A model generated the notes under the pieces. That model did no database searches and was not told where the DNA came from. It saw only the letters and a program-made list of their open reading frames with translations. The position numbers were made by a program, and so were the translations under genes. Source: Podarcis melisellensis (taxonomy: Eukaryota). From it: a stretch of 64,000 nucleotides of DNA. Positions within the stretch are counted from its first letter, which is position 1; each line of letters starts with the position of its first letter. Positions 20,370-55,077 of this stretch are shown piece after piece. Location: the NCBI GenBank assembly GCA_964234715.1, contig OZ174290.1. One strand, 5' to 3'.

Positions 20370-22329
20370 GTGTAGAGGCTATTAGCAGGTGTGTGGCTCC
20401 TTTGAATCTGAAGCAGACTCAGAATTTTAAAGGGATGCATTTATATACATTTTTGGAATTTATTTCTAAATTTCTGTTTTTTAATCTGGCCCACTCCAAA
20501 CGGGGCCAGGAAGTCCACCCCTCATTTCTTCTCACAGTTCCCTTAGAGGAACCCAGAGGTGCAGCTGCTGGGAGACTTTCCATGAACTATGATTCACAGA
20601 AGCCAAGCAGCACAAATGGAAGCACAGGTGCATGGCGAGTGGAAAGAGGGTTGTCCCGCTGGAGGACTGGGGTCAAATGAATCGCATGCCCAGCCTGTTT
20701 TGCTTCCAAGGCATCTTGGTACCTCCGAGTGTTTGCTGTTGCCTGGTGAGCATTGCAAGTTGGGCAAAATCTATCAGCAAAGTGGCAGTGACCCTTTGCT
20801 AATTGGCAACCTCTTATGGGGAACCATGAAAAGCTGGTCAGGGAAATGGCCCAAAATGTGTGGTGGTGGTGGTTTTAGGCTGCAAATATCTGACATAGGC
20901 AACTGCGAGCCAGTGGGCTAGTAATGTTAATGGCAGCAGCAGATAACTTTTTTATCCAGCTGTTCACCACAAAACAATGTTAAATAATATTTAGGCTACC
21001 TGTACTATTTATGCTCGGGCTGTTGTGCATTGATTTCCCCACCCGTTAGGAATTTTCACGTTTTTGGCTACAGTTCTTCATAGTCTGAACCTCCACATGC
21101 TTCCCAATTGTTTACTCCTTCAAATCTGGAAAACCTGGGCAACTGCTTTTCAGTCCCCATGGGCCATCTACTAGTGAGAGGGTGAGAGGGTAAGAGAAAA
21201 GGATGTGGAGGCTGGGAAGAAAACCCCCCAACCCAACCAGACCCCAGGGGATTCTTGCTTGCACGCTCCCTTCTTTTGAGGCCTCTGTTCTTGTCAGCCC
21301 CTGTGCCTGGAATACCAGAGTAGGCTCTCTAATGATGACCTCATTATGCGTGCCACTACTGAGCCCAAAATGCACTAATTTCCTGACCCGGTGAAATATA
21401 TTTTAATAAGCTTGATCTAGAGCAGCGTTTAAAGACAAAGGGAAACACTTAACGTGGCTGTCAAAATAAAGCACTCTTGGGCAGATGTTAAAAATGTTAA
21501 TAGGATTAATCCATCAGAAGCACCCAGGAGAGCCTGCCCTGTTTGTATACCTCTATTTGCCATTTTAAAGCACAGGGTTAAACTATTTCTTTGGAGAGAG
21601 AAAGAGAGGGGGAAATGGATTAAATTTTGAGGTCGTGCAATTTTTCTTAAATTAGTTTATAGCTTGCTGTGCTGCCCAGTAATGCCTATATTTGATTCTA
21701 TGGATTTTTAGTGCTTACCGTGGGATCTTCAATCAAACCCAGTTACCCAGGCAAGTTCATTACACTTAAAAGTTTTTTAAACCACCTCTTCCTCCCCCAC
21801 CCCCGAACTTTTTAGTAGAATTCTGTCTCTCTTGATACAACGATGGACATCTCTGTTGTGCTTTTAATAATCTCTGTAAAACATTCCTGGCTTTGTGTAC
21901 TTTTGTTTCAATGGGAAATGGAACAAATACTCACCAGGGCACTAGGAAGATTTGCGCTGACAGCATCCTTTTTTGGGTTGTGACCAAAGTGAGATTTGCC
22001 ATGGGCTGCATCTGTGACATACAGCTGCAGAACGCAACAAGAAGTTCCATCGTGTCACTCATGGTATTTAACATTTCATGAAATGGCTGGATGAGATCAT
22101 CCAGACGTGCAATGTCTGGAGTGCGGCGTCATCTGTAGATCAGTCATACCCAATTCTAACTCTCCCTTTCATCTGACCCTGGGAAGACAGTGTGAATTCT
22201 AAATAGGGGCCTTAAGTCAGCCGTGAATTAGATGAGTGTGAGCAAAATTTGAAAAGACACATGTATTGTTAGCTGGGCCGATGCTGGAGATATGCACCTT
22301 TATTGTACAGGGTTGTACTTCCCCTAAAG

Positions 22330-30987: not shown

Positions 30988-31047
30988 GTTTTCCGGCAGC
31001 AGCCTACGGACCAGTAGCAGCGGCAGTGGCAGCAGCAAGAGGATCAG
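30988..31047 (+). CDS. MSI2: MSI2 constitutive exon (human exon 11 equivalent), 60 nt: (G)[19 protein letters not shown](G)
   Basis: Pyrimidine tract 30950-30980, ggccAG acceptor 30986-30987, donor CAG|GTAGGG at 31048; matches human [22 protein letters not shown] minus one Ala. Confidence 0.96.
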
Positions 31048-31104
31048 GTAGGGGGGGCCGTGGAAGAGGCGGCTACATGGCATACCTTCAGAATGCAGGG
31101 CCAG
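31048..31104 (+). CDS. MSI2: Alternative 5' splice-site extension of exon 11, 57 nt: GRGGRGRGGYMAYLQNAGP
   Basis: Open frame continues to a second donor CAG|GTAAAA at 31105, preserving phase 1; resembles a segment recalled from teleost msi2 isoforms. Confidence 0.75.
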
Positions 31105-48628: not shown

Positions 48629-50559
48629 CAGGGAGCATGTCCTATTGTTGGGTCCTTCCAGCCTTCCAGTTCTGAAGCATGCTTTGGACCCGTTTAGCTC
48701 CAACGTTGTACGTTGGACCTCTACTAGCAACCCAAATTAAGCAACGTTGAAGAACAGCCGCTGGTTTTTGAAGTATAAAAGTTGGAGACGGTAACGGCAG
48801 GTTTCCAGTTGGCTTGTATGCCCAGCGCTACATGTGCTGAGTGTCGGCGCTCCTTGTTCGACAGCGTCTCCCTGATGTACACATTACTACACGCAGCTTC
48901 TGCCTCCACTTTCATCTGTATCGGCAGCATTAAATATTATTATATCATTTACTCTCTCGAGCAGGAAAATGATGTTTGGCAGCTTGTTCTATGAATTTTT
49001 CATAAAGATAAAAAGCGGCCTAATCTTGTGAGCTTTAACTCTCAGTAGCAGTAATGGCTTTGATTTAAAGTGTTTTGTCTTAATGATAGTTATATTGAAA
49101 ATTTCCTGCTGCTTTCAAGCACGCACGGTTATTATCATAAACACTGATGGTGCAAACGGCTGCCAAATTTGCGTGTGGCTGCTTATGGCAAGAGAGGAGA
49201 GAGAAAGAGAGACAGGGAGCTCGTCGACAGGTTGCTGTCAGTGAGACCTTTCAGTCTGAGAGCATTTTGAGTCTTCCTGAAGTTTTGCTTTGACCTCCAA
49301 AAGTGACTTTTGGGCTTCTCTTCACTTCTCAGCCCTGTGGTCCACAGCCAGGCAAGGATAGCAAGATGAAGCAGAATCTCAGGCAGTGTTTGTACAGCTG
49401 TTCTTCTGGAAAGTACCCTTAATAAAGGAGCGTTTACACATGCTGCCATCATTCTGCGCTAAAGTCGGAACACACAGTTGTTAAGTGTCCTCTGGAGGGC
49501 CAAGGCCCTCAATAGAGACCAATTATTTACATCCACTTGGGCAAAAATTCCCCACGTTGCACGATCCTGCAGAAAATGGCCTACAAACAGATTTGGGGTC
49601 ACTTCCCAATGGCTGGTGCACTTGGAAAGAGAAAGAGTTGGAAGTCCAGGGCTTGTCTGTCCTGCAAGGAACACCACACCAAGGAGAATTAGTTGGCATG
49701 GAAATTAATTCTGCATAAGTGAGTTCTGCTTTGAATGTCCTTGTGGGAGAAATCACTTCCCCTCCCATTTTTCTCGGTGTGCATTCTTAAGATGTGTGTT
49801 GAGAGAGTCCACATGCATCGTTCTGTCTGGCTTCTGGGAGATCTGCCATACATGTCTTTGGGACCTAAATAGGTAGCTATCTGACCCTTCACAAGTTACA
49901 AAGGCACAAGGCAAGTGCCTGCTTTGCAGCACATATTTAAGAGTACTGGTCAAACCTCAAAAAAGAGATAAACTCAGTAATACAGGTGCTTTGTGCTACG
50001 ATCTAATGAGAAAGAAACTATCACAAAACTCTGTAGAGATTCATGGAAGTTTGGAGCAGAAAAGTAATTTCCTGAGAGTTATTTATTTTTCCCTGTTCAA
50101 TTCTTTCCTGAATTCACCATCTGGAGGCTCTGTTTTCATAATGGAGTGATCTATTTTGGTGATACAGTTGATGCTGAAAGTAATAAATAAATAAATAAAT
50201 AAATAAATCTTACTTTCTGTTTTATTTAAGTTCATCTTTTCTGTCCTGCAAGTTCAGACCTGCTCTTGCCTTTTGCTGGAAGGCAATTATGAATGTGGAA
50301 GAGCAAAAGTCTTCCTGATGCTGGGGGGGGGGCGTTCTTTGTTGTTAGCAGTGGCTTACAACACAGATATTAAAATGTACCTCTAGTCCACTTGGCTTGG
50401 GAGAATAAATGTGTAGGCTGGTTTGTTAAAATGCATGCAGACTTTTTTGCACCAACAAATTTGCTGTCCTTTAAAGGATGCCCATGATGTGAAATAAGAA
50501 CAAGTTTACTATCCCAAATGCCAACCAATTGTGAAGTTCACTCACTGCTTTGGTCAAAC

Positions 50560-50772
50560 TTGGCTACTAGCCATGATGGCTATGCTCTGCCTCCACTATT
50601 TGGAGACAGTATACTTTGGAATACCAGTTGCCGGAAACCACAGGAAGGGAGAGCATTGTTGCACTCAGCTCCTGCTTGCAGGCTCCCCATTGAAGCATCT
50701 GGTGGCCACTGGGAGAACAGGATGCTGAACAAGATGGGCCATTGCCCTGATTGAGCATGGCTCTTAGTTCTT
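50560..50772 (+). mobile_element. CR1-family 3'UTR fragment
   Basis: ggctactagccatgatggcta...ggccactg.gagaacaggatgctg.ac.agatgggcc...ggctctta.gttct. Confidence 0.7.
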
Positions 50773-51717
50773 TTGAGATTCCCTCTGCTTAGCTAGGTTA
50801 AATGTGGAGTAGATTAACTATTTGTGATACTTGCCTATTAATTAATTTTTGTCACTTATACTAATTCTCAGTTTGAAGGTTGTGACGAGGTTTAATAGAA
50901 ATAGAATGAATAGAAAGAAACTTCTGTTTACTTCCTACTGGGACCCAAACCAATTGAAATCTATAAACTGCCTTATTAAAGCCATAGCTTTGTATGATGT
51001 GAGACTCACTCATCTCATCTGGGGCTCTGTGGAGTTCAACTTTTATGGCCAGGGCATTAACAGAAACTCCAAACCTTGCACTATGCAGTACTAAAATGGA
51101 GGTGGGGGGTGGGAGTGATCTTGTAGGATCCAGTACAACAGGAAATCCAGGTAAGATCAAATAAGGAACATTTCTCAATTAATACATATATATACTTTGG
51201 TACAAATAGTTATGCACACGCACGCACACACTTTGTATACATTGCACCTGGTGGTTGGGGATTTTTTTTGCTTTTTATGAGTTTGGGGAAAGGGACCTCA
51301 TGTGGATGAACCCCTGTAGCTTTGCAAGGTTAGGCCCTGTCAGCTTGGTTCGGCTTTTCTCTACACTTCTCAGTATGTATTGCATTGGTTGTCATTTTAA
51401 TCAGTTGGGGCTCTGTGTTTCCATACTTCTGTTCTTGTCCCTGTTTTGGAAAAGAATATATAGTGGTGGGTTTATGTTTTTTTGTTTTTTTACAAAATCC
51501 AGGCTCAATGCCTCTGAACCTATGAGTCTGAGTAAGGACCCTGGAGCGTGTATGATCAAGCTGTGGTCCACTTGCTCCTCAAAATCCTACATACATATAT
51601 ATTTTTGCTCTTGTTTCCGTGATTTGTAACTGTAAAATAATAATAATAAAGTACAATTTAATATTGAAAATAAGAACCAATCCAGTATCCACAATGATAG
51701 AGTCACTGTATCTCCAG

Positions 51718-51894
51718 GGATCCCCGATTACGGTTTCTATTCTCCGCCCGGTGACCAACGGGCTCAATTATCCTACGCGGACTATGGTTCCATGGGGCCT
51801 CGGGTGGCTCAGATGCTTCGTAGCGAGCACCCTGCTTCAGCGAGTAACTCCCCCCTTCACCACCTTCCCAGCCCGGATCAATTTAAAAGCCCAG
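51718..51894 (+). CDS. MSI2: MSI2 177-nt cassette exon: (G)IPDYGFYSPPGDQRAQLSYADYGSMGPRVAQMLRSEHPASASNSPLHHLPSPDQFKSP(G)
   Basis: tctccAG acceptor 51716-51717, donor CAG|GTTTGT at 51895, 59 codons with no stop in phase 1; GC/CpG-rich island in AT-rich intron; similar to a segment recalled from fish msi2. Confidence 0.85.
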
Positions 51895-53586
51895 GTTTGT
51901 ATAGAATTTCATTCATTTGGGGAAGCAAAAGAAAAGAAAAATGGCAATAGCATCACATATTTAACGATGCACAGAAAGAGATCTGCATGCTATGTATGCC
52001 ACTTAATGGTTGGCAATCAAACTTCACTCCATCCTTTTACTCAGTTCTAGAGTTTTTGTCGACTTTGCTTCAGTTGTGAAGGGCACAGTTTTCTTTTAGG
52101 GGCTGTTCCAGATCTGATCAAATGTCAATCAAAACCTTTTGTAGACTCATGACAGCAGAGAGTGAAGTAGCTCATTAGATGTGCAGGGCAATCTTATTCA
52201 TGTCTACTTCAAAGTAAGTCTTGAGCTTAAAAAGTGCATTCCCTCTTAAGATGGGCGTGAATCAAAATTTAGCTGTATTCTTTAAAGATTAAATAAAGGA
52301 CCCTAATAATTTGTGTTGATTTTTTCAAGATTCTTCTTAACCCCAGAGATTTTGATGCAAAAGGTTTCAAACTGCATATTCTGTTGAAAGTTATTATTAG
52401 CTAGGTATTTGACCTGAAAGAGATGCTTAGAATAAGGTGTGTGTGCTTGTGCATGAATGATACTTCATCCTCCTGAGAATCTTTTACTTTGCTTCTTCCA
52501 GAAATTTGTTTCTGACATTTGATGAGCTCTTTCATTAGCAATCTGATCCTAAATACCTCTTCAGTGCACCTATCTTATGCTGCATAAGCTTCATGCAGTT
52601 TATCATTTCAACTGAACTGGGAACTATTGTTAGATTTAACTGTGGTTTCTCCAAACAATCCAAGATCAAATTGTGTTTTCTGATCCTGACTTGTTTGGAT
52701 AAAACCATTGTTGAAATTAAATGAAAATCCTGGTTTGGATGAAACAATAAACCGTGGTTAGTTGAAAATGCTTTTGATTTTTTCTTTGTGGCTATAACAG
52801 GAAGAGCAGACCAAGTCAGGCTCACTAAATTACAACTTAGTGTTATGTCCAAACCTGGTCATTGTTTTCTACAAGGATTCCACAAATGTATCTATGACTT
52901 AGATTTTTAGCATATTCTTTCTTGAAACAGACAGTCTTCTCAGGGCCCCTTCACACCTGTTTTTGAATTATCACCAAATGCAGATTCGCAAATTCTGCAT
53001 TCCACCTAGAATGAACTCTCGCAATGAAACCTTGGTTTACATTATGTGTTGAAAGAGTTCCTACTGGTCTTAATGTTTAAATAAGAGGAGGAATGTCTTG
53101 CTGTTGCTCATAGGCATGTGGTGGCTTCTAAATATATACTTACATAGAGTTCACCACTTGAATGAGTCAGCCATCATCTCTCCCCTCCCCACCTTGGAAA
53201 ATCCTACGTAACTAGTTGGCCTAAATACCTGTACATGGGGTTGATTTTTTGACAGTCTTGTAAAATTGCTGAAGTGCTTTTGCCTTGAAAATAGGAAGCC
53301 ATCATTTCCTCCTCACTTTGTGAATCCACCTCAGTATAATGCGCCATATGCTAAGGCAGATGTCATAATGAATCATGGCTGCAAATTCCTCCCCATTTTA
53401 TCAAAGAGAGTTTATCTTTCAGTGGTGACCTTTCTTGTCCAGAACTGGAGTAATTTGTGTGCAGGCTTTGTGTTAACATGCCAGTTCATAGGACAAAGTG
53501 CCTGATAAGCCAGCCTTAGCTCTCACTTGTCAGCAGTGCCAGCAGAATCATGCTCTGGGCTTTTGCCACACAAGCACTCCTTAATG

Positions 53587-53723
53587 CAGCCTTCCCCAAC
53601 CTGGTGCCCTCCATATGTTTTTGACTACAGCTCCCATCAGCCCCAGTCAGCACAGTCATGGGGCCTGTGGCTGATCAAAGCTGTAGTCAAAAACATATGG
53701 AGGGCACCAAATTGGGGGAGGTG
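53587..53723. mobile_element. Palindromic hAT-Charlie-type MITE, older copy
   Basis: Inverted arms tggtgccctccatatgtttttgactacagct / agctgtagtcaaaaacatatggagggcacca. Further decayed copies at ~15067-15180, ~23207-23300, ~47815-47895. Confidence 0.85.
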
Positions 53724-54026
53724 CTTTAAGATTTCACCATTTGGGCTCCTCACCTTGCTTCCAAATCATGCAGTAAGCAGAATAGTAGATTCCCCTTTGT
53801 CTCAGGAGAGAAAGTCCTGTTTCCCATTTGCATATGTTAATTCATCAAATCATGAATTAAAAATTGACCAGCATTGAGGCGCACCTAAAACTGTTTTAGA
53901 TACAATACTGGAAGGTGCTACTGGAAGGAATTTTTTTTTGTTTAGATACAATAGTTTAAAATCAGCAAGTAGGAACACTCAAGCCAGGATCAAAACAAAT
54001 GGTGGAACTAATTTGCCTGGTATTTT

Positions 54027-54175
54027 GGATAGCTCAGTTGATTAGCGTTTGGTACTGATAATGCCAAGGTCACAGTTTGATCCCCATACAGGAAAGTTGC
54101 ATATTCCTGCTTTGAAGGGGGTCGGACTATATGATCCCCAGAGTCCTTTCCAACTCTGCAATTCTGTGATTCTAA
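54027..54175 (+). mobile_element. tRNA-headed SINE with CR1-derived tail
   Basis: tagctcagttg.ttag...gataatgccaaggtc.cag.ttgatcccc head, then ggact.tatgat...ctttccaactct..aattctgtgattct CR1 end. Confidence 0.8.
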
Positions 54176-55077
54176 GTGAGCATGCAAAAGTGTTTTGAAC
54201 AGTGAGGGGGCTCTGAGGATCATTGCATTACAGCCAGAATGTACATGCAGGTAGCCTTTTATGTTTAAAGGTATTTAATTGCATTATGTCCTGGTGAGCC
54301 ATCAGGCAGAATTCTGGCTGTATTCTTTTCATTATATCACCACAAATCACCTTATCCTGCAGATTAATAAAAACTCACTTTTTGGATTAAAAACACACAT
54401 ATGCTCAGGCCCCGCTGTCAGAACGCTCTATATCTGAAATCTCAGTTATCTGAATACAACAAATTATATCCAAACCTTACTACACAAATGGCTAATTCAG
54501 ATACCGGAATAGCCAAAGTTTGCCCACTTCCTTACTCATTTGAGTTTTGCTGGTCCACAACAGCCATTTTCAGTGGAAACCACAGAGGAAGGGTGAGATA
54601 TCAGACAAATCAGAAAGCAGGAAAGATTGGACAAATCAGTTATTCCTTCTTTGGCTTTTGTTGATTGGCTGCAGGCAGAAAGCATGAAGGGAGAAAGCAT
54701 GCATTAGACATGTTCCCACAGGAAATAATGGATATGATCATCTCGTTTTGTGAATACAATATATTTTGTGAATACAATATATTTTCTGGGAATGAATCCT
54801 GTTCGGAAGGCGAGACCTGTGTGTACATGTAACATTGCACATTGTTTTACCGAAGAGATGCTACAGAAATAATGCTTAAAATCTATAGGTTGGAATATAT
54901 AGGTTTAGGGTACAGAAGTGTGTGAATTTTTAACACGTATATTGAAACAGTTATGTCCCTAATGAAGTTTGGAAATGAAATCCTCAGAGAATGAGGATGC
55001 TGAATATGAAGGAGATGAGATCCAGCAGAGAAAAGCAGGGGGGATTTATATTAAATGCCACATTCTGTAGCAAGGAC

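Follow-up and report, generated by a model that had tools for sequence, protein, structure and literature searches.

The long intron of MSI2 between the Ala-rich exon (exon 11 of mammals) and the exon-12 acceptors raises the question of whether this gene carries a further coding exon in the lizard Podarcis melisellensis, how the use of such an exon would be controlled, and what it would add to the Musashi-2 protein. We addressed this question in a stretch of 64,000 nucleotides from contig OZ174290.1 (NCBI GenBank assembly GCA_964234715.1), hereafter the window, in which positions are counted from the first letter. A preliminary description of the window had proposed that a 59-residue cassette exon, absent from canonical mammalian MSI2, begins at position 51718.

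Anatomy of the exon

The exon occupies positions 51718..51894 on the plus strand and measures 177 nt, or 59 codons, in an open frame of phase 1-1. Its in-frame translation is (G)IPDYGFYSPPGDQRAQLSYADYGSMGPRVAQMLRSEHPASASNSPLHHLPSPDQFKSP(G), that is, 58 full residues between two split Gly codons. With a slash marking each splice boundary, the borders read ...tctccag/GGATCCCCGATTAC...AAAAGCCCAG/gtttgtat, which places the acceptor at 51717/51718 and the donor, CAG/gtttgt, at 51894/51895. The first half of the peptide is rich in aromatic residues (PDYGFY...SYADYG), with Tyr at residues 4, 7, 19 and 22; the middle reads AQMLRSEH; and the second half, NSPLHHLPSPDQFKSP, is rich in Ser-Pro and in His. 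The peptide's Ser-Pro sites stand in YSPP, NSPL, PSPD and KSPG. Upstream, 20,614 nt separate the exon from the RGG donor at 31104. Comparison with the sequence and its translation showed that the preliminary description was correct in every detail of this anatomy, including the frame, the four Tyr, the four Ser-Pro sites, the A-rich acceptor region, the GTTTGT donor and the TGCATG downstream. Stretches of 59 codons stay open at a rate of about 0.06 per frame, which makes the open frame weak evidence by itself; that the exon is real follows from its homology and its dN/dS and not from the openness of the frame.

A known MSI2 exon as old as the jawed vertebrates

When the 58 residues were compared by phmmer with 1.84 billion representative proteins, 39 matched, 31 with E-values below 1e-10. 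The named hits were Musashi-2 proteins or fragments of a frog, sharks and teleosts, with E-values down to 4.5e-29, and the matches that we inspected were all Musashi-2 or open reading frames of the MSI2 locus, with the exception of P0038, a repetitive protein of 499 aa. It should be noted that the exon was searched by itself, and that its full-length context comes from database proteins and region-restricted searches and not from a spliced model of the window's exons.

In local alignments the exon peptide is identical at 58/58 residues to RefSeq MSI2 isoforms of Podarcis muralis, Lacerta agilis and Zootoca vivipara. Identity elsewhere is 55/58 in turtles, 50-54/58 in amphibians, 43-44/58 in bichir and sturgeon and about 70% in sharks. 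A region-restricted query with an eel isoform matched 224 clusters, and all 120 clusters listed were teleost, while a query with a shark fragment retrieved sharks, rays and a chimaera. Querying with a chimaera isoform added frogs (among them Xenopus laevis and X. tropicalis), salamanders, turtles and lizards of several families, and the same query found bichir, sturgeon and paddlefish to be annotated with the exon as well. The cluster listings further include Anolis, Rhineura, geckos and many turtles, and the exon is present in more than 300 protein clusters overall. Orthologous exons measure 177 nt, or 180 nt in ray-finned fishes, and keep both the 1-1 phase and the AG...GTTTGT borders.

Judged by this full-length homology, the exon is an ortholog of an annotated MSI2 exon and is as old as the jawed vertebrates. 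The preliminary description had called it ancient, and its annotation in a chimaera, sharks and rays bears this out; homologous exons are found in other vertebrates from sharks to lizards. The exon is thereby no discovery: it is already known from public gene models of lacertid lizards, turtles, frogs, fishes and sharks, and it cannot be called novel because the RefSeq models of lacertid lizards already contain an identical peptide. The MSI2 isoforms X1-X6 of Podarcis muralis (e.g., XP_028563837.1) share with the window the exon, the RGG extension and the exon order, with nothing different, and isoforms X3, X5 and X14 of Lacerta agilis (e.g., XP_033027242.1) and X3 of Zootoca vivipara have the same exon peptide as the window. 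In tblastn comparisons with P0251 and P0249, the Ala-rich exon of the window is closer to Podarcis than to Lacerta.

The exhaustive phmmer search and the word-index protein searches returned no hit named as a mammal, bird, crocodilian or snake. Clustering at 90% and 50% may hide members, and the word index missed one known frog match, so these searches do not prove absence. The names of the hits, which come from protein searches and not from genomes, are consistent with the absence of the exon from canonical mammalian MSI2, and on this point the preliminary description was right: the exon is genuine, and the canonical 328-aa form of mammals lacks it. The names agree as well with the proposal that the exon was lost or fell silent in mammals. 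For one isoform of 410 aa that includes the exon, the UniRef label 'n=3 Archelosauria' hints at an archosaur with an identical exon-bearing protein; an exact look-up of that 410-aa isoform gave no match.

Selection on the encoded segment

Six orthologous genomic copies were obtained through the exact look-up of database proteins, which together with the window gives seven loci. They comprise a second, squamate-like locus (L001), at 78% nucleotide identity across 808 nt with the introns counted, a frog-like locus (L002), a teleost (L003), the shark Chiloscyllium (L004), the turtle Chelonia (L005) and the paddlefish Polyodon (L006). By the method of Nei and Gojobori, dN/dS lies between 0.07 and 0.19 in all 21 pairs of these seven loci. 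This ratio had been proposed beforehand as a check on the exon, and its values point to strong purifying selection since the jawed-vertebrate ancestor.

Across 298 proteins with 76 distinct peptides, the invariant or nearly invariant elements are PDYGFY, ADY, AQML, SEH, NSP and SPDQFK. Five aromatic positions (4, 6, 7, 19 and 22) are kept as Tyr or Phe, position 19 being one or the other. The Ser-Pro sites fare unequally. YSPP in this register is lizard-specific, with other taxa having S/T-P one residue later or none, and the last site is KSP in some sequences and KNP in others. Bony vertebrates retain both NSP and SPDQFK; sharks have the former at a shifted place and vary at the latter. The preliminary description had stressed all four Ser-Pro sites of the peptide, and this stands for NSP and SPDQFK, which are widely kept, but not for YSPP and KSP, which are poorly conserved. 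The pattern of substitution thus appears to place the constraint on five aromatic positions and two Ser-Pro sites, and not on four Ser-Pro sites.

Splice sites and the downstream intron

The 3' splice-site region, CCACAATGATAGAGTCACTGTATCTCCAG (51689..51717, plus strand), consists of a short pyrimidine tract, the AG and a branch point candidate in CAATGAT. Pyrimidines fill 11 of the 18 positions from -20 to -3, and upstream of about -30 the sequence is A-rich. In the seven-way alignment, this flank is kept from shark and teleost to lizard as CAATGAT.GAG.C...CTGTATCT(C)CCAG, its end reading CTGT(A/G)TCT(C)CCAG, and by the yUnAy consensus the branch point likely falls within CAATGAT. The 5' splice site, GTTTGT (51895..51900, plus strand), has U at +3 and +4 and is invariant in 7/7 loci (lizard, second squamate, turtle, frog, paddlefish, teleost and shark). 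U at these two positions of a 5' splice site weakens pairing with U1.

Two elements of the downstream intron deserve attention. One is an intronic G-run, GGGG (51919..51922, plus strand), at +25 to +28 from the donor. It is part of a TTTCATT.ATT.GGGG block that is kept in the four tetrapod loci (the window, L001, L002 and L005) and not in the fishes, and it is a possible intronic splicing enhancer of the hnRNP H/F type. The other is TGCATG (51984..51989, plus strand), an RBFOX-type (U)GCAUG element at +90 from the donor. A (U)GCAUG within a few hundred nt downstream of a cassette exon promotes its inclusion via RBFOX proteins. The same hexamer occurs at +81 in the squamate-like locus, +80 in the turtle Chelonia, +82 in the frog and +93 in the paddlefish Polyodon, and is thus found at +80 to +93 in five species from three deep lineages (amniotes, frog and paddlefish). 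The only copies of the teleost lie farther off, at +207 and +327. GCATG occurs in the shark at a nominal +87, across a gap; a run of N at 51208-51253 of this locus begins 13 nt past the shark donor, which makes the offset nominal. Given a background in the window of 0.56 TGCATG per kb per strand, the chance of meeting the motif in a window of 30 nt is about 0.017 per independent lineage, and in frog and paddlefish the intron around it is no longer alignable. Within 400 nt upstream of the exon, neither the window nor the other tetrapod loci have a GCATG, and UAG motifs downstream of the exon are few and not conserved.

This anatomy is that of a regulated exon, and the conserved TGCATG supports control of the RBFOX type. 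Enhancement of inclusion by downstream RBFOX binding had been suggested for this exon before. The suggestion gains from the similar offset of TGCATG in five species and from the invariant GTTTGT, while dependence on RBFOX is something that we infer. The exon resembles RBFOX-activated cassette exons in combining a weak splice site with a conserved UGCAUG less than 100 nt downstream over several hundred million years; it differs from them in that RBFOX is here a putative regulator, and in that the one teleost examined has the motif farther off.

Neighbouring exons and isoform combinations

The Ala-rich exon of MSI2 (FPAAAYGPVAAAVAAARGSG; 30988..31104, plus strand) was placed by its sequence and by tblastn of P0251 and P0249. 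It has two donors, a canonical one after 31048 and an alternative RGG donor after 31104, and either joins 51718 in frame because both end in CAG plus one base of the next codon. The RGG extension, GRGGRGRGGYMAYLQNAGPG, is identical between the window and the RefSeq lacertid isoforms. In annotated isoforms, the exon order is the Ala-rich exon, the cassette, and then the VLNSY or the GSNPARPGG exon; in homologues, the segment correspondingly stands between ...ARGSG (or the RGG extension) and VLNSY... or G(T/S)NPxRPGG.... The downstream VLNSY and G(S/T)NP exons lie beyond the end of the window, and that side is known from annotated proteins.

The preliminary description had suggested that fish isoforms carry a similar segment directly after the RGG extension, and annotated fish isoforms do so. 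It had further proposed that the exon may be co-selected with the RGG donor. Among the annotated isoforms such coupling is not obligatory: lizard and turtle models include the exon both with the RGG extension (P0250, P0251) and without it (P0300, P0283). The same lizards also have annotated isoforms that lack the exon (P0297, P0298). These annotated isoforms are automated models that enumerate combinations, and are not a measure of inclusion level or tissue pattern.

Reading on past the donor adds GLYRISFIWGSKRKEKWQ (51895-51951), followed by a stop. Isoform X14 of Lacerta agilis (P0249), a read-through model, matches the window at 78/78 residues, the intron-encoded GLYRISFIWGSKRKEKWQ included, and a Xenopus tropicalis model is similar. 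The product would truncate MSI2 upstream of its regulatory serines, and the isoform may represent intron retention in a gene model. Intronic polyadenylation was considered as its origin and dropped, since conservation of the downstream poly(A) signals does not extend to the other loci.

Further variants were seen at this position in other vertebrates. Isoforms X5 and X8 of the eel Anguilla rostrata (P0039, P0044) use an internal donor after ...AQMLH (CAT G/GTGAG) and retain only the Tyr-rich first 35 residues. A half-exon of this kind was rejected for the lizard, where the window at about 51818-51826 has CGT AGC, without G/GT. Alternative terminal exons (EFVWMPRQDRAKF... and GS.LIPSSILCTPV...) follow the cassette in frogs (P0221, P0223, P0275, P0277), salamanders (P0230, P0232, P0234) and the paddlefish (P0272). 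The resulting tails seem to stop before the canonical C-terminus and its two regulatory Ser-Pro sites, and they resemble in this the truncated human variant 2. Elsewhere in the window, tblastn weakly matched positions 21699-21791 (61% over 31 residues) to VLTVGSSIKPSYPALLPYLNAS, a further MSI2 coding segment of alternative use, which long Podarcis and Lacerta isoforms have between YSYQFP and the Ala-rich exon.

Read-level data

A search for sequencing runs found none on record as RNA for this species. Four small runs of uncertain type were mapped as contigs on 49500-54500, where about half of the intronic stretch was covered, at low depth and in patches. They are probably RNA runs with pre-mRNA reads from related species, since their cover is far above what 70 Mb drawn at random would give from a genome of about 1.3-1.4 Gb (the size of the contigs of the whole-genome runs). 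Run X1 shows differences from the window at 2-5% of positions in its intronic contigs and at 0/307 in the exon unitig together with the upstream-flank unitig. The exon unitig is 181 nt long, covers exactly 51715-51895 and overlaps an intron unitig by 30 nt (k-1), which implies a branch in the assembly graph at the exon unitig. Its letters beyond the exon, CAG on the left and G on the right, are those shared with the ...GGATCAG/ donor and with the G-initial next exon (GSNPARPGG). The unitig fits, in an indirect way, spliced use of the exon from the canonical donor.

In all four runs, contig depth rises to 10-1000x that of the surrounding intron at 50502-50835, 53508-53674 and 53842-54175, and these places show many loose ends at 50561/50596 and 53587/53621. 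All three are probably interspersed repeats.

The segment in the Musashi-2 protein

AlphaFold2, run with an alignment of 45 sequences, folded the two RRMs of the 404-residue Podarcis isoform and gave residues 187-404 a pLDDT below 50. Within the insert the pLDDT is 23-32, and the only helix, itself of low confidence, spans the AQMLRSEH part. No Pfam family matches the exon segment. The model thus predicts a disordered insert. The phospho-switch and condensate roles put forward in the preliminary description are plausible for such a segment, as pure inference. There is some likeness to low-complexity aromatic tails of the hnRNP type, with their [G/S]Y[G/S] stickers, in the predicted disorder and in the spaced aromatics in DYG/ADYG contexts; unlike those tails, the exon is without a repeat array and has no more than five aromatic positions over 22 residues.

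The exon peptide strings did not occur in the literature that was searched. Two published systems nonetheless touch on this part of the protein. Xenopus Msi2 is activated by phosphorylation at S356 and S381, which are S278 and S303 of the human protein (MacNicol et al. 2017, PMC5599597). These regulatory serines lie outside the exon. Frog and salamander isoforms of 406 aa that combine the exon with the VLNSY segment have Ser356 and Ser381 exactly, and their exon is identical to that of the window at 52/58 residues. The 406-aa Xenopus Msi2 (xrp1) cDNA of the oocyte maturation assays has the same serine numbering as these exon-bearing amphibian isoforms, and the exon segment itself was not the subject of that study (PMC5599597). 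The offset of 78 residues from the human numbering is unreachable without the 59-residue exon, and the residue numbering therefore indicates that the cDNA used in the oocyte assays, and with it the protein, very probably carries the exon. In the same work, mouse Msi2 rescued oocyte maturation more slowly than Xenopus Msi2 (PMC5599597).

The second system is human MSI2-324, in which an insert of 18 residues at the same tail junction drives MSI2 into the nucleus and removes its ability to activate translation (Walters et al. 2026 preprint, PMC13228403). Like the lizard exon, it is an alternative insert in the disordered C-terminal tail, downstream of the exon-11 donor. It differs in its sequence (VLNSY...) and in arising from an alternative exon-12 acceptor and not from a cassette, and lizards have VLNSY as a separate choice. 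The human case indicates that small inserts at this tail junction can alter MSI2 function.

A probable regulated cassette and its alternatives

Taken together, we consider it highly probable that 51718-51894 is a conserved cassette exon of MSI2, alternatively included, most likely under RBFOX, and encoding a predicted disordered insert of the tail. Under this model, the exon would be included alternatively and without loss of frame, skipping would be the default, and inclusion would be promoted by factors that bind the intron downstream, of which RBFOX is the most likely, so that the long isoform would be enriched where RBFOX is active (neurons and muscle). Inclusion would add 59 disordered residues to the regulatory tail at the C-terminus, ahead of the two Ser-Pro sites known to be regulatory. 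They would sit at the junction at which the human insert of 18 residues moves MSI2 between cytoplasm and nucleus. The added segment may tune the partner binding, self-association or localisation of MSI2 and not its RNA binding.

Other readings of the locus have to be weighed against this one. That the frame is open by chance, or that the exon is an unused pseudo-exon with splice-like ends, might be argued from the roughly 6% of frames expected to stay open over 59 codons and from the lack of an RNA run on record for the species; it is refuted by conservation and has a probability close to nil, in view of MSI2 matches from sharks to frogs with E-values as low as 4.5e-29, 100% identity to annotated lizard isoforms, dN/dS of about 0.1 and a donor invariant in seven species. 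The exon might instead be essentially constitutive in non-mammalian vertebrates, as their ancestral default, with loss in mammals (perhaps also in birds) as the only event. Most of the long isoforms retrieved for reptiles, amphibians and fishes do have the exon, and the Xenopus cDNA that was cloned first and assayed carries it by residue numbering. Our searches were seeded with the exon, however, and thereby selected for isoforms that include it; exon-less isoforms exist in the same lizards (P0297, P0298), and the features seen here, namely an invariant weak donor, a short pyrimidine tract and a UGCAUG conserved downstream, typically mark regulated exons. We therefore regard constitutive inclusion as quite unlikely.

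A third reading accepts the exon as real and assigns its control to factors other than RBFOX, either hnRNP H/F on the G-run or Musashi itself, with the TGCATG kept for some other purpose. Conservation of GGGG at +25 to +28 among tetrapods speaks for it, as does a teleost locus that has no TGCATG near +90. Against it stands the near-equal distance of TGCATG in frog and paddlefish despite an intron that can no longer be aligned, with a chance of about 0.017 per lineage, and the few and unconserved UAG motifs downstream. Control by such factors is a possibility to which we give some weight without expecting it to hold.

The model of an RBFOX-regulated cassette can be carried further. It may be that the exon is an RBFOX-switched disordered module, placed at the junction of the human localisation switch and lost in mammals (perhaps also in birds and snakes), and that it alters the localisation, partners or activation kinetics of MSI2. 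We put this forward as speculation, and rather doubt that it holds in full.

Implications

The existence of the exon adds nothing new, as gene models of the same lizards include it. What may be of use is its bearing on how Musashi-2 is compared between species. The Xenopus Msi2 that has been studied appears to contain the exon, and mammalian work uses forms without it; cross-species comparisons of activity would therefore mix isoforms. The exon sits at the junction that decides localisation and translational output in human cells, and its combination of a weak donor with a downstream UGCAUG, which predates the split between sharks and bony vertebrates, offers a simple regulatory model that could be tested in zebrafish, Xenopus or lizard cells. 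If the exon is indeed an RBFOX-switched module, it could help to explain why Xenopus Msi2, its probable carrier, rescues oocyte maturation faster than mouse Msi2, from which it is missing.
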